Positions 46,327 to 64,000 of a stretch of 64,000 bases of DNA are shown here, in pieces. Origin of the DNA: Tetramitus jugosus. Taxonomy: Eukaryota; Protista; Heterolobosea. The position numbers were made by a program, and so were the translations under genes. How positions within the stretch are numbered: position 1 is the stretch's first letter; the number at the start of each line of letters is the position of its first letter. The stretch covers positions 620,001-684,000 of the forward strand of contig OW569344.1 of the NCBI GenBank assembly GCA_937625935.1, written 5' to 3'. A model generated the notes under the pieces. The model was not told where the DNA came from. It did not search any database and saw only the letters and a list, made by a program, of their open reading frames with translations.

Positions 46327-47058
46327 TCAAAATTGTTTACATCCAGCTGGTTTAGGTCCCTCGTAAACATAACAAACAAACGGCAACATGTTGAATTCTA
46401 TATTGTTCTTCACCCACTCTGTGGTTTGTCCGTTCAGACCCATCCATGGCAACTGAAAGCTAGGGAAAGTCTTCAAGCTCTTTGTAGCCAAGGCCATTTG
46501 GTGCATCACCTGATTGCCAAGCTCACCATTGACACATGCATCCATCTCTTCAATATCAAGGTCAAAGTGAGGAGCACAGTCATGTGCAGCTGGAAGAGGA
46601 TCCAAAAATCGAATGTACAAGTTATTTGACATACAATTGATGAACGGGAGAGCTCTAGCTGAGTCATTACCCTTCAAAGCAATAGCACAGGCTTGATACA
46701 TGTTTCCCTCACATTCTATTGTTCCGTGATCACACTTGAACTGATATTGGTTGTTCTTTCCAATGGTTTCATTGGCCTTGCCAAATGGAACTAAACGCAG
46801 ATTGATAATCTCAGAGAGTCCCTGTGCTTGCATTGTGGGATACACCTCAGTTGTGATGAACTGCAAGGAGAAAAAGTCTTGTGTTTCATAGTAGACGTCC
46901 AGATTCAACTTTTCAGCATCGCCAGAAGCAGTATCAGCTGAAACCTTGTTGGTTGTGGTCTTGTGGTGGCGGTAGTGAACCTTCCTCTTTGAAGCCAAAA
47001 GTACGTTTAACAAACAAAAGATGAGCACCAAGAAGATGACGAGTTTGGAAGATTGCAT
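46327..47058 (-). CDS. GILT (lysosomal thiol reductase) family protein, paralogue 1, active-site CXXC absent
   Basis: Signal peptide, VYYETQDFFS..FI, LVPFGKA, CDHG..EC.GN signature. Confidence 0.88.
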   Translation of the reverse strand: MQSSKLVIFLVLIFCLLNVLLASKRKVHYRHHKTTTNKVSADTASGDAEKLNLDVYYETQDFFSLQFITTEVYPTMQAQGLSEIINLRLVPFGKANETIGKNNQYQFKCDHGTIECEGNMYQACAIALKGNDSARALPFINCMSNNLYIRFLDPLPAAHDCAPHFDLDIEEMDACVNGELGNQVMHQMALATKSLKTFPSFQLPWMGLNGQTTEWVKNNIEFNMLPFVCYVYEGPKPAGCKQF

Positions 47059-47408
47059 GCTGTCGTTGTTAAGTTGTGTGAGTTGTTGGTGTGTTTTTTT
47101 CCGTTTCAGAATAAGGTTGTTCTGAAGGGAGGGACTATCGGGTAAGATCTACGGAGGATTTCGATCGGAACTATTTTGATTGTACAAGAAACGGAAGATT
47201 TACTTCCCAAAGCATTTCGTTAATCCTGACTTCCTTACGTGGACAATTGTTTCTGAGATCCATATCTTTAAAAGCCAGCTGCAAGTTATCAAACTCCTCA
47301 TGGTAGTGAAGCGGAGCGATATGAAGCTCAATTTGTGAAGGTCTGCAATGGTGCAGTCTCTAGAGAATAAACACCAAGATTTAACTTTATTGTTCACGAT
47401 GTTTCTAT

Positions 47409-48134
47409 TCAATACTTGCATCCAGCTGGTTGAGGTCCCTTGTAAAGAGAACAAACATATCGCAACATATTGAATTCCATGTAGTTCTTCACCCACTCTC
47501 CAGTTTGTCCGTTCAAACTGAGCCATGGTAGCAGGAAGTCAGGGGTAGGTTTTAAGCTCTTTGTAGCCAAGGCCATTTGATGCATCACCTGATTGCCAAG
47601 CTCACCATTGACACATGCATCCAACTGTACGGTATCAATATCAAAGCGAGGAGCACAGTCATGTGCAGCTGGAAGAGGATCCAAAAATCGCTCATACAAG
47701 TTGAATGACATGCAATCGATGAACGGGAGAGCTTCAGCAGAGCTGTTACCCTTCAAAGCAATAGCACAAGCCTGATACATGTTTCCCTCACAATCTGGGA
47801 GCCCGTATTCACATTTGAACTGATATTGGTTGTTCTTTCCAATGGTTTCATTGGCCTTGCCAAATGGAACTAAACGCAGATTGATAATCTCAGAGAGTCC
47901 CTGTGCTTGCATTGTGGGATACACCTCAGTTGTGATGAACTGCAAGGAGAAAAAGTCTTGTGTTTCATAGTAGACGTCAATACTAATTTTTTCAGCATCG
48001 TCAGAAGCCACCTTGTTATTCATTGTGGTCCTGTGGTGGTGACGAGAAACTTTTCTCAATCTCTTTGCGGCCAAAAGAACATGGGACAAACATATGACGA
48101 GAACCAAGAAGAGGATCACTTTGGAAGATTGCAT
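47409..48134 (-). CDS. GILT family protein, paralogue 2, active-site CXXC absent
   Basis: Tandem duplicate of 46327-47058; CEYGLPDCEGN variant of the signature. Confidence 0.88.
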   Translation of the reverse strand: MQSSKVILFLVLVICLSHVLLAAKRLRKVSRHHHRTTMNNKVASDDAEKISIDVYYETQDFFSLQFITTEVYPTMQAQGLSEIINLRLVPFGKANETIGKNNQYQFKCEYGLPDCEGNMYQACAIALKGNSSAEALPFIDCMSFNLYERFLDPLPAAHDCAPRFDIDTVQLDACVNGELGNQVMHQMALATKSLKPTPDFLLPWLSLNGQTGEWVKNYMEFNMLRYVCSLYKGPQPAGCKY

Positions 48135-48356
48135 GTTGCTTATTAATGTGTGTGATGATTGTTTGGTAAATGGATTTTGTTGTGTTCGTTCACACAACAA
48201 ACAACCCAATGAGGAGAAACGAGGAAGATTTCCGGAGCATAGATTGTGTGCAGAATCATAATGGATGGTTTTGATGGATGGCAGCAGCGGAAGATTGTGT
48301 GGAACCGTTTCTAAAATGCATTCAACAATGCGAGTTTATGAGACTGGATTAAAACT

Positions 48357-58702: not shown

Positions 58703-60391
58703 CTATACAGCTGTTAACAAGAGCGACATAACCACTAGAGTAACCAACCAAACTGCAGAACCAATTGGTGACAACCCAGAAGTTCCAGATGTATGGACAG
58801 GGGAAGTAGTTGGATTATGAGAAGTTACCGGATCATGAGAGGTGACTGGATCAGGAGAAGCAACTGGATCAGCAACACAAGAGGGCTTGAACTTTGTTAG
58901 AATGCTGGATGAAGGAGGGGTCGTGAAAGGATCGTTGTACTTCTTAGAATCAATGAATCTGATTGAGTCAATGTACAATGTCCTCATCTTAGATTGATCA
59001 ATCAGTAAGATGGAGAATCCACTGATTGATTGAATGCCAGAGAAATTCATATCGGTCAATGGAACACGAACTCTGGACCAAGCTGTTGAATCGATCTTGT
59101 AGTTTGAAATATATTTCTGAGTGACGTCAATACTGCAGATTCGAGTGTAATTCATATCGACCCACTGGAAGTTGATCTTTGCTTCTCCATCAGCACTCTT
59201 GACAAAGAATTCAAAGTAATCATACTTTGAAGTATCAATCTCAGGACTTCCTCTGTAGTTTGGATCAGTAGGGTTGAGCTTTGCATGATTGATCGTGACT
59301 GCTCCTTTTTGGATTTCAAGTTTAAGAGAATGGGCTCCACACAATGGTTGCTCAATGCTCGAAAAATTGGCCACAGGTTTCACTTCTCCCGCTGGCCACA
59401 CAGTAGTATAAAATCCCCATGTTGGCCAACCAGGCAGATCAGATCTCTCGTTATAAATTTTGAAATAATCCGATTGATTGATTGCACAGGCTGTTTGAAG
59501 AGTTGGGATGATAGGTGGCAGATCACACGATGAACCTGAACACATGATGTGGCCCATTAACTCTCCATTCGGATTCTTCTTTGTTGAAACCTTCACATAC
59601 AACTCGCCTTTGACCAGAGCTGTCCATTCACTATGTGATAGCTGTACAGAGGCACGAATAGGGCTATAGTAACTATTTTTCAATTCAATAGTACGTTGTT
59701 GTACTTTTGGATCCCCTTGTAATAGCGTCACACCAGTTGCAATTTCAGATAGGTCATGGTGAATGTTGAACTGCAATTCTCTTCGATTGGGAAGAAGATA
59801 GAAGAAACCAACACCACTACCACTACTTTCAACTCTACCAGGCATTTGACATGCTTGAAGCATAGCTTGATAGGCATTTTCATTGGTCTGTATCTGAGCA
59901 GGGATTGCGACCTTGTCAGAGCTGAGAGTGCAGTTGGTACATGATGCCTTGACAGTTAAACTGATACCATTGTAGGTGTAATCTACAAAACCCCAGCGCT
60001 CTGAGTAAAAAGCTTCGGTACTACGGAGATAGTTCTCAAACTTCAAATAGAGGTGCTCTCCAATCGTATCATAGTAGTAGGTAGCGTATTCCAAATCGCT
60101 AAGCTTGAACACTTGTTTCAATGAGGAAGGAGGTCCTTGCCATTTGGATGAGGTAACATTAAATGGAAGGGCACTTTGAGGGTATGGAATAGCGAGAACA
60201 ATCCAATCTCCGAGAGCTGTACTATCCATTTTGATCACTAAATTCTGAGGAGTTGGTGTATTACCTCTGTACCTAACTGTGTAACCTGTTCTAGCTCTGA
60301 TGTTACCCATTAATTGGAATTCGTCTGAGCCATGGTATCGTCCAAAGAGATCCGTTTTCTCATTCTGGGATCCTAGCTTAAGGATGTAGTT
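58703..60391 (-). pseudogene. 3' part of an interrupted TMEM2/CEMIP-like surface protein with CHRD-like domain, S/T/P stalk and GPI-type C-terminus
   Basis: GYTVRY....P..L.I.M.....GDWIVLAIPYP resembles CEMIP GYTIHW...P..L.I.L.....GDWIRVGLCYP. L..GELYV.V.T..NPNGE..G.I is CHRD-like; PVTSHD repeats. The ORF-track ATG at 60409 lies inside the inserted element. Confidence 0.8.
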
Positions 60392-60510
60392 CGGTGAAAT
60401 AAAACCCATAATAAAAAAATTATGATTTCCCGAGAAGACACCTTAACGCTCCTACATAATCTGGACTTACATAGCAGCTTGATGGAGTGAGCCTTGGAGG
60501 TGTTCCACCA
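60377..60510 (-). ncRNA. Predicted Fanzor omegaRNA (scaffold about 60510-60392 plus flank-derived guide of about 15 nt)
   Basis: Nested stems: GGUGGA/UUCACC (60509-504 with 60398-393), ACACCU/AGGUGU, GCUC/GAGC, CUAUGUAA/UUAUGUAG, and the CAUAAU/AUUAUG hairpin. It overlaps the Fanzor 3' end and abuts the element boundary. Confidence 0.7.
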
Positions 60511-62353
60511 TTTTGATTAATTCTTTTGCGACCTTTTTCTTCCTCTTGAAGGCATCGGGACGTGACTGTCCATCCATTTCTGTTCTCAGTAGATGGAGCA
60601 TGTTCTTGGCCGCATTGATGTCTCTGTTGTGAGTCACTAAACATTTAGTGGTTGCACACTGTTTAACTCCTCGGACGACAGAGACATTCAACGTTCCATT
60701 CTTGTCTATTCTCTTATGCTTGACTGGCTTGAGTTGACAATGACAGCCATTGCAAATCTGAGAAGTCTTACACTCATCCACCATATGGACTTGGAAATGC
60801 TCAGTCATTCTCTTCAACAATTTGACTTTAGGACTAACCATGTTACCCTTTTAACTATTCTTGAATCCACCATTGCCCATCCCAATCAACATACTTCTTC
60901 CTTTCGACTTCTTTTTCAAATCATTCTTCACACCAGAAAGAGTCTTGTCTCTCATCATGTAACTGTCCCAATTCAGTTTCTTCACCTTTGAAGAACAATA
61001 AAAGTCCAACAAATCTTCCTCGACTTCCAAAACCGAATCAATATGTTCTAGGTACAAGTCATTAGACGAGACATTAGAAGTCTTGATCGAGTTGTGGAGT
61101 TGATCAACATTCTTCCCACTCTTCTCATTCCACTGCTTTTGGAATTTCAATAATCGTTTCTTGTTCTTGGAATGGTGAGAGAGGTGATGGTAGGTCTTGT
61201 TACTCAACTCCCATTTGTTACCATCATTATCAACACAAGACAATAAGGTAACAATACCGGGATCAATGCCCACCAAGTATTCGGATTGAGGGATTGGAGG
61301 TTTTGGATCAACCTTTTTCTTCTTGGGTGCCTTTTCCTCTGACTTCTTCTTTTTCACCTTGTGGTTCACATGGTTATCAATCAATTGATGTCTAACAACC
61401 ACAGAGGCCTGTATACCATCTGTTCTCACAGAGTCAATCTGCAACTTTCTTGAACCGACATTCAAACAATCAAGGTTGTATGAAAACACTGGGCCTTTTT
61501 GGATCTTGTCTAACAATTTTTGAAATTCTTTGGTTCCAATTTCGATACATCTACACCTAAAATGACACTGTGGCAACAAAGTAAATGATTTCCTGTCTTT
61601 AGAGATCAAATATTTTTGAATGTGCCAGTAAAGTTTGAGAATTTGATTAGGATTCTTTTCGATGTAATCTTCACTCATTGGTTCTTTTGTGCCAACAACG
61701 TCATTCACTTCTTTGATCAATTGAGGGATTAAATAAATCAATTCTTGAGGAGGCAGTTTTTGAAAGTCATACACCTCAGCCGTAAAGATTAATTTTCTAA
61801 TGATGTAATCAATCACTCTTCTTTGTTCACTTTTTGGAATCTTCAAAGATGGATCAATCAATTCTTCCATTCTCAGTCTCAAATAGCGCTTCAATCTTTG
61901 CTCCAAAGTGAATTGAAACATATTGGAGATATTAGTGGCCAATGATTTGGCAACATAATTGAATGAATCTGAATAGCCATTGTATATTTTTCGCAACTTT
62001 TCGATTTCATCATTCATGTTGATGGTGGCATTGATTCTTTCAACATTCTTGGTTCTATCAACAGAGTTTCTTCCAAAAAGGACAGAACAAATTCTTTGAA
62101 TGAAGCCTTGATTCACCTCAGGAATATTCACTCGTGATTCCAAGCACTTCAAAACAAAGGAATTGAGGAGCCTAGAGATTCTAATAGCTGCTCTAGTAAT
62201 TCCTTTTGCTCTTTCTTCAATCACTGGAACTAAAGAAGGATGATTCTTCAATAGAGATTTCAAACCAACCTTGATGACATAATGAGAAGAATAGTTTTCC
62301 TTATTGACTCTTGTTCTCTTCCTCTTCCCACTCATGGGTACTCCTCGAGGCAT
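60467..62353 (-). pseudogene. Fanzor1-type (TnpB-related) RNA-guided endonuclease, about 628 codons, single in-frame TAA at 60853-60851
   Basis: VIKVGL, FTLLP, RTDG, RuvC-I VGIDPG, GNGGF....KG....P, RuvC-II VDE..TS, Zn finger CNGC...CATTKC, RuvC-III NRDINAA.NM. NLS-like KRKR and PKKKKV. The two ORF-track pieces are in the same frame. Confidence 0.92.
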
Positions 62354-62732: not shown

Positions 62733-63439
62733 CTATTTGCAGTGTGCATTGTAGATTCTCTGAGCAAGTTTCAAGTAGGAGAATACAAGCGGTACCAATG
62801 TGTATTGAATTCTCTTGACACCACCCTGACCAAAGTGCTTTCTGGCTGCGGCCAAAACTTTAAACAATTGATCAGTATCGCTATTGTCAAACAAATGAAC
62901 CAATCTGGCAATCAAGTTCTGTTCTTCTTCGAAATCTTCGAGCAATGTTGCAGCTATTGGTGAGTCGTCAGAAGGTGAGAATGTTGTCTGGTCTTCCTCA
63001 TCCTTCAACAGTGGACGAATCAAATCAAACAGTTTGTTTACTTGTTCAAATGTTGAAATCTTGTGTCCATTGTCAAGTGCGCATCTCACAATGCTCAGTG
63101 CAATAAACTTTCTCTGTTCATATCCAAGAGAATGAATAATATCACCATACTTCTCCAACTTCAAAACTGTTAGCACATTGTTGTATGACTCGAGTGGCAC
63201 CAACAACAATCGCTTCAACATGTCTACAATTTCATCTGAAGCAAGTGCAGTGATATTCAATTGACTAGCAATGTTATTAATAATCTTGTTGACATAGTCA
63301 GTGTTATCAGGATATGTTTGAAGAGCAAGTGTCATCAATGAGATCTGAATACTCAAGTTATCGGACAATTCAACATCTCTCTAATGGTATCAATAGTAGG
63401 ACAGAATTTGACAAACATCAGAAAACTCACACTCATCAT
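62733..63439 (-). pseudogene. VPS35: Captured internal fragment of retromer subunit Vps35, with upstream intron 63430-63381
   Basis: QISL..LAL..YPD..DYV.K, LL..P...Y....VL.L..Y, DFEEEQ.L.ARLVH, ARKHFG.GG..RI..TL.PLVF. Lacks the N-terminal and C-terminal thirds of Vps35. Confidence 0.9.
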
Positions 63440-63525
63440 CAGGTCACTCGCTCTCACGATGTCCTTCAGAGTGTTTGTTTTCTGTTTTTTGCAAGTTTTT
63501 TTTGATGAAAAAAATCAATGAACAA

Positions 63526-63846
63526 ATGGGAAAACAAGGAAAAGGCGCCAAAAGAAGACATAACCAACACCAACAATTGGTAAAGTTTGGAGTCAAAAGA
63601 AAAGTAAGAATAACCGATATACATATTGATTTATTTGTGTATCTAGTTGGTTCGTTCCTTGGTGTAGAAGATGTGTTGAATTTGGTATTGACGTGTCGGG
63701 ATTTTCGATCTTCGATAGTCAATAATCTATCAACAATAAGGTCTTATATGGACAATTTGTACTCACACTGTTTGGCCGTTTGCAAGTCAGGCTTACCGTG
63801 CAAATTGCAAAGGAAATTTTTTGTGCCTGTTTTGATTGCTTGTTGA
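63526..63846 (+). pseudogene. Captured, truncated F-box-like N-terminal fragment
   Basis: ITDIHIDLFVYLVGSFLGVEDVLNLVLTCRDFR fits the F-box pattern; its stop codon falls in the element's terminal hairpin. Confidence 0.55.
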
Positions 63847-63863: not shown

Positions 63864-64000
63864 CGCAGTTCCGTTTAGTCCGGTGTGCTCTGTCAAATCG
63901 GCTTTTGGATCTTGAATAACCAATTGAACAAAACCTTCACCAAAGTATGGACAGGAATATCCGTTCCATTCTGGTTTAGCAGTACATGTCTTGGATGTCA
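63864..64000 (-). pseudogene. Upstream part of the interrupted TMEM2/CEMIP-like gene; continues beyond the window
   Basis: Manual translation TSKTCTAKPEWNGYSCPYFGEGFVQLVIQDPKADLTEHTGLNGTA resembles CEMIP C..VPDW.G.IC...YAQ.YIQ, which precedes the GYTIHW motif. Confidence 0.8.

Follow-up and report, generated by a model that had tools for sequence, protein, structure and literature searches.

The closest counterparts of the locus analysed here are found among Fanzor1 systems, in which a TDG motif in the WED domain marks the protein (PMC10711439), and the RNA has three stems and no pseudoknot, holds the TIR and the TSD in its scaffold and extends ~15 nt past the TSD (PMC10711439). In SpuFz1/Spu-1 of Spizellomyces punctatus, as here, the element in which Fanzor1 resides has inverted repeats (IRs), is multi-copy and lacks a transposase, and as is predicted here, a region of ~70-75 nt ends at the right IR, a 14-15-nt guide is taken from the flank and the TAM is made up of the TSD and upstream bases (PMC10432273). 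Spu-1 has a CATA TAM and 30-nt IRs, whereas the present element has TTAA ends and TIRs of 12-17 bp that are of two types (PMC10432273); the present locus further differs from it in its host-gene cargo (Vps35), in predicted stems that reach into the ORF and in a protein that is distantly similar (53 bits). The Fanzor1s of SfAV and related insect viruses also belong to a non-autonomous TIR element, with a pseudoknot-free three-stem scaffold that contains the TIR and the TSD and an RNA that ends ~15 nt past the TSD, as is also predicted here (PMC10711439). Unlike these, the present system is found in a cellular protist genome, has ~40 right ends and a TTAA TSD, and is a mosaic of ORF and TIR types. 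GtFz1 of Guillardia theta has a TTAA-containing TAM (TTAAN), as proposed here, and a 150-nt omegaRNA that overlaps the end of the ORF, as predicted here, but GtFz1 loci seem to be devoid of IRs, whereas the present element has TIRs (PMC10432273, PMC11423790).

The locus lies in a 64,000-nucleotide stretch of Tetramitus jugosus DNA, referred to as the window, in which a Fanzor omegaRNA had been predicted from the sequence alone (hereafter, the original prediction). Sequence and predicted RNA features place the locus in a known type of system, i.e., a Fanzor1 within a non-autonomous TIR element, and an omegaRNA that overlaps the 3′ end of the Fanzor1 ORF is very likely. The best explanation of the whole, which we regard as highly probable, is that the region analysed forms the 3′ end of a TTAA TIR element and would specify a Fanzor1 omegaRNA with a TIR/TSD stem and a guide from the flank, directing cutting of the empty site.

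A TTAA element with Kolobok-like ends

Comparison of copies shows that the region analysed belongs to the 3′ end of a TTAA-duplicating TIR transposon that carries Fanzor1, with the following features:

62733..63368, minus strand: captured Vps35 fragment, cargo inside the element (Pfam Vps35, E 7.5e-44)
60467..62353, minus strand: Fanzor1 ORF of 628 codons, interrupted by TAA at 60853-60851 (Pfam, PDB, sister copies)
60382..60398, minus strand: right TIR, type A (inverted match to left-end TTAA followed by GGATGTAGTTCG, 9 copies); contains the guide of the original prediction
60378..60381, minus strand: TTAA TSD, predicted last scaffold bases (TTAA flanks both ends of intact copies)

The genome contains ~40 matches to the 3′ end of the element, which is a young, multi-copy transposon. 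Several unlinked copies align with the window up to 60378 and diverge beyond, and at least seven unlinked copies share the right terminal end AACUACAUCCUUAA with unrelated flanks. Intact copies start with TTAA followed by GGATGTAGTTCG and finish with CGAACTACATCC followed by TTAA, the right and left type A TIRs being perfectly matched over 12 bp and at 15/17 positions overall. In a second, larger group (B) the TIRs begin with GGTGGCGGTC and are likewise flanked by TTAA; ends A and B diverge right after ATTATGG. ORF type and TIR type assort independently among the copies.

The signature of Kolobok DNA transposons, which have been reported from Naegleria, is a TTAA TSD with 5′-RR...YY-3′ termini (PMC9587614), and the present element resembles them in having TTAA-GG...CC-TTAA termini in both TIR types. 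It differs from them in that neither a transposase nor KolX is present within it; at the genome level, the PF20700 profile found no Kolobok/Mutator transposase, a negative that rests on one profile whose controls were likewise silent. No serine recombinase ORF was present in the copies inspected. A piggyBac origin (TTAA TSD, non-RR...YY termini) was considered and rejected because the GG...CC termini follow the Kolobok pattern. Judged by its sequence, the element is a non-autonomous TIR transposon with Kolobok-like ends, and Kolobok is not among the Fanzor carriers that are listed in a review (PMC13565253, section 5.5).

The Vps35 fragment is found in most copies inspected, as a 200-aa ORF, and a second ORF lies on the opposite strand to it at 63475-63846. 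In the RNA run X9, depth over the element peaks at the Vps35 cargo, to which the native Vps35 transcript may contribute. Elsewhere in the window, 46337-48138 is a tandem duplication with a period of ~1.08 kb and 79-84% identity.

The Fanzor1 protein and its relatives

In Pfam, the Fanzor ORF matches Cas12f1-like_TNB, with OrfB_IS605 below the cut-off, and in the PDB SpuFz1 is its sole significant match (E 1.9e-13, 53 bits), GtFz1 giving no match at E below 1. The RuvC triad, which is invariant in seven proteins, is formed by D373 (GIDPG), E536 (DE) and D587 (NRD). As in other Fanzor1s, RuvC-II E536 lies ~6 residues before the zinc finger (C543/C546), the TDG motif of the WED domain is present and invariant (R321-T322-D323-G324), and the ORFs exceed 600 aa (628-642 aa in the copies inspected). 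By its PDB match, the protein is nearer to Fanzor1 than to Fanzor2/TnpB.

As assembled, the protein of the window copy is dead. In place of the premature TAA, the two nearest sister copies have TAT, as do three public runs with coverage of this codon. The genome contains ~20 full-length Fanzor ORFs without stops, and intact sister proteins are encoded, for instance, at G000:C8:612180-614090 and C19:169658-171541. Both the TAA (60851) and a Y-to-C change adjacent to the catalytic E (60771) are missing from public contigs at this locus, each being either an assembly error or a private mutation.

At least three Fanzor ORF types occur, with 65%, 83% and 91-100% identity to the C8 copy (window 60700-62353 versus sisters), and their last 100 codons and RNA region are nearly identical. 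Sequence comparison suggests that this 3′ end of the Fanzor ORF and RNA region was spread by gene conversion. An element of 2.2 kb (G000:C32:2808-4989), which is bounded on either side by A-type TIRs and carries a diverged Fanzor of 42-44% identity, probably represents the donor family of the A-type end. Two Fanzor relatives (~61%; L052:4521-4556 and L054:3862-3897) have a 3′ end without CCTTAA, the common sequence stopping at CTACTCTAT, and in L052 a DUF4326 gene lies upstream; they suggest that the same Fanzor clade resides in another carrier. A scan of viral contigs gave no match to the family, and a metagenome scan gave two partial loci only.

The predicted omegaRNA scaffold

Region 60377-60510 folds better than shuffled sequences (z -3.1), and its MFE structure consists of three successive hairpins:

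60480..60510, minus strand: hairpin 1 (UGGUGGA/UCCAUCA), within the ORF (pair probability 0.94-0.99)
60448..60478, minus strand: hairpin 2, which holds the Fanzor stop codon, candidate SL1 equivalent (conservation of pairing)
60378..60446, minus strand: terminal stem-loop of 69 nt closed by UUAAGG/CCUUAA (z -3.1; MFE; relatives)

That a Fanzor omegaRNA overlaps the 3′ end of the ORF had been proposed before and is likely, the layout being that of published Fanzor1, but the boundaries, guide and TAM then assigned to it are wrong. The motifs on which the original prediction was built are real (GGUGGA at 60509-60504, UUCACC at 60398-60393, ACACCU at 60503-60498, AGGUGU at 60443-60438, CUAUGUAA/UUAUGUAG at 60474-60452 holding the Fanzor stop, and CAUAAU/AUUAUG at 60424-60407). 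Its 5′ limit near 60510 and its two local hairpins may be right; the hairpins are part of the MFE, and the stop-codon hairpin shows double-sided changes. The long-range GGUGGA/UUCACC stem that was thought to enclose them, however, has a probability of 0.00 on the full end, versus 0.94-0.99 for the local GGUGGA/UCCAUC, and forms only on a sequence truncated at 60393 (z -1.4). When the covariation check proposed along with it was run, this stem had 65% of cells paired across relatives, with no compensation, and the whole proposed structure 87%. The MFE instead pairs most of the supposed guide with UUAAGGUGU at 60446-60438. The ACACCU/AGGUGU pairing, which is kept at 87% across relatives, could be an alternative fold that forms prior to TIR transcription.

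In an unfitted 8-row alignment, the three-hairpin structure has 93% of cells paired and five doubly changed pairs (0/500 shuffles), the eight rows being kin and the shuffle counts not being probabilities. Most of this covariation sits in hairpin 2 (91-92% of cells paired, four pairs changed on both sides), which is common to the corrected and the original model; SL1 of Fz1 has 7 bp (PMC11423790). Hairpin 1 has 96% of cells paired and zero double-sided changes, is also present in the fold of the relative L053 (z -5.9), and may or may not belong to the mature RNA. The closing stem shows no covariation among the eight related rows because it is invariant; it is part of the MFE in seven of nine rows, within 0.2 kcal of it in one, and absent in one with a competing flank. 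The CCTTAA end is shared by relatives whose proteins are 75%, 59% and 42% identical; in these relatives an internal TTAAGG lies 75-82 nt before the end, compared with 69 nt in the window. The UUAAGG/CCUUAA closure recurs in L051, L053 and L057, with z-scores for the terminal stem of -6.9 in L053 and -3.3 in L057. Sequence conservation halts exactly after CCTTAA. The predicted closing stem would hold the TIR and the 3′ TSD base-paired, as in Fanzor1 omegaRNAs, and this corrected layout matches that of published Fanzor1 RNAs (PMC10711439, PMC13565253); the Rfam search gave no match for the RNA region.

The terminal stem might alternatively act as DNA, or as an internal copy of the transposase-binding end, with the functional guide fixed within the TIR. 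The internal TTAAGG is indeed the start of the left end, and the divergence of ends A and B just past ATTATGG resembles that of swappable cassettes; yet G-U pairs and family-specific compensated inner stems preserve an RNA-type hairpin in four families, and the published Fanzor1 layout already accounts for the pairing (PMC10711439), which makes this alternative very improbable.

An RNA scaffold remains our preferred reading of the terminal stem, whose two arms have different affinities. The 5′ arm of the window copy is identical to B-end copies at 31-34/34 positions and to L057, whose Fanzor is 42% identical and whose A-type end is native, at 19/34, whereas its 3′ arm is identical to L057 at 31/35 and to B-end copies at 24/35. 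The stem is therefore probably a hybrid of a 5′ arm from the B-end family and a 3′ arm from a distant A-end family, and the simplest reading of the sequences is that a crossover near ATTRTGG swapped the TIR and left the stem still foldable.

Some copies offer natural scaffold mutants: L033 (G000:C11), L015, L017 and L042 have deletions of 5-29 nt in the predicted omegaRNA, some of them with intact ORFs. In L038 (615-627, Fanzor orientation), a variant of the internal TTAAGG matches the right flank of that same copy for 9 bases past TTAA, unlike in its sisters, and is a possible template switch.

Guide and TAM

The predicted guide lies immediately beyond the end of the scaffold:

60363..60377, minus strand: predicted guide GCUAGGAUCCCAGAA, host flank past the TSD (flank varies between copies)

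The original prediction ended the scaffold at 60392, but the sequence common to copies extends to 60378. The guide that it read from there, AACUACAUCCUUAAG (60391-60378), is invariant among A-type copies, consists of right TIR and TSD sequence and is itself base-paired within the scaffold. In contrast, flanks differ among copies from the first base after CCTTAA, so that 60377-60363 is variable as expected of a guide; its length of 15 nt is assumed from the literature (PMC10711439). The mean unpaired probability of this predicted guide is 0.77, and no other site in the assembly has fewer than 2 mismatches to TTAA plus its first 13 bases.

The 5′ TSD forms part of the TAM in Fanzor (PMC13565253). 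Here, the base before the left TTAA is T in 15 cases, A in 5, C in 1 and G in 0, while the base at the mirrored right position is C in 11, A in 7, T in 6 and G in 1 (Fisher p 0.003 versus left). The TAM is probably (T/A)TTAA, although this skew could also reflect an orientation preference of the transposase. A (T/A)TTAA TAM would be expected to spare the element's own right junction, C-TTAA. An assay would need the corrected guide, TAM and scaffold; the versions first proposed would fail.

The disrupted host gene and the empty allele

The element interrupts a G8/CEMIP-like gene of the host:

63868..64000, running past the window, minus strand: portion of the interrupted host G8/CEMIP-like gene that lies 5′ of the element (82% aa identity to paralogue)
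63864..63867, minus strand: TGCG, element nt 194-197, with which the left-truncated element now begins
58703..60377, minus strand: portion of the interrupted host gene that lies 3′ of the element (CEMIP_X, CHRD, CBM-like; domains, homologues)

The paralogue with which the 5′ part shares 82% identity is intact, is 1301 aa long and lies on contig C28. At the junction, 16 codons of this paralogue and of a homologue from another species are missing or partial; 46-50 nt of the host gene, left TTAA included, were lost at the left break, and the first 193 nt of the element are absent from the window copy. The (T)GCG taken for the TAM in the original prediction is not host sequence but nt 194-197 of intact copies, and in six to eight other copies the same TGCG is preceded by element sequence; this TAM is unrelated to the present left flank, a finding which the prediction itself had named as decisive against it.

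An empty allele is present in two independent DNA runs (X1, X7), in which 63868 is joined to 60360 via 57 other letters. The runs were analysed as Logan contigs, from which RNA ends and strand cannot be read. The empty-allele contigs cease matching at 63868, and on the other side the allele departs at guide +17 and resumes at +18. Homologues lead to an expectation of 71 letters, so the allele is 14 nt short; its length is also off frame (57 is 0 mod 3, 2 mod 3 being needed), and it appears to be frameshifted. It belongs to a second haplotype, defined by SNPs common to X1, X4 and X7, which a single X7 contig connects to the joint. A search for a protein from the empty allele matched only homologues of other species.

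The empty allele of the original prediction, in which GGAACTGCG was joined to AACTACATCC, needs 35 letters, in contrast to the 57 found, and is 12 codons shorter than two homologues (4 versus 16 codons at the junction). The motifs exist, truncation of the sequence at 60393 makes the pairing the MFE, and the join is in frame, by a one-in-three coincidence. Nevertheless, unlinked copies whose flanks are unrelated carry the proposed guide unchanged, and this guide is an inverted copy of the left end. Copy comparison, pair probabilities and the empty-allele contigs lead us to reject the long-range fold, boundary, TAM and empty site first proposed, a model that is almost certainly wrong.

Signs of activity and their possible causes

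By extension from the Fanzor1 literature, a transcript of ~115-150 nt would start in the end of the ORF, fold into one or two hairpins followed by a terminal stem in which the TIR and TSD are incorporated, and continue ~15 nt into the flank, this last part being the guide. The RNP would recognize (T/A)TTAA and a match to the guide, i.e., the empty insertion site, and cut ~14-21 nt downstream, while a bias against C at -1 would protect the right junction of filled sites, C-TTAA. A filled copy used as repair template would restore the element, aborted repair would yield copies with an intact right end and a truncated left end such as the window copy, and end-joining would yield a broken empty allele. 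The RNA of the window copy could serve intact sister proteins.

Several observations bear on this scheme. The cuts made by Fz1 enzymes lie 14-21 nt beyond the TAM (PMC10432273), and because the departure at +17 falls within this range, a cut-and-repair scar is a plausible origin of the empty allele. In L044, TTAA and the first 12 bases of the right flank are repeated at the truncated left end, and in L037 and L043 the break leaves TTAA in place 4-6 nt away; these marks and the broken empty allele fit Fanzor cutting and homing in vivo, without proving it. Right ends without a recognized left end outnumber the reverse (~15 versus 2), a count that is not taken as proof because variant left ends could be missed, and the copies inspected include six truncated on the left and two on the right.

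The omegaRNA could also be as corrected here, with the truncations and the broken empty allele stemming from transposase excision and abortive gap repair or from ordinary deletions. Cut-and-paste excision breaks at TTAA and would account for L037 and L043, in which TTAA is retained 4-6 nt from the break, and the two right-truncated copies also agree with such causes, as does the window copy, one of three of the six left-truncated copies with no TTAA near the break. However, the 12 bases past the TSD in L044 call for a break downstream of TTAA in the empty site or for a templated insertion, and the departure of the empty haplotype at +17 lies in the Fz1 cut window of 14-21 nt (PMC10432273). This explanation is a serious contender that falls somewhat short of an even chance.

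Returning to Fanzor cutting, its fullest version is that Fanzor1 homing is at work here: one haplotype would be the outcome of homing that was aborted and the other a 'resistance' deletion at the cut site, the module would have switched ends by recombination in the terminal hairpin to give a functional hybrid RNA, and the carrier would be of Kolobok type. We advance this combination tentatively and consider it rather doubtful as a whole. If true, it would add a Kolobok-type carrier that is missing from the published list. The hybrid stem suggests a route by which Fanzor1 modules could move between transposon families with a foldable RNA kept. The natural role of Fanzor is treated as a hypothesis (PMC10432273, discussion). 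The present cultured amoeba appears to hold both filled and empty alleles of one site together with ~20 full-length sister proteins, and homing would therefore be directly testable in it.
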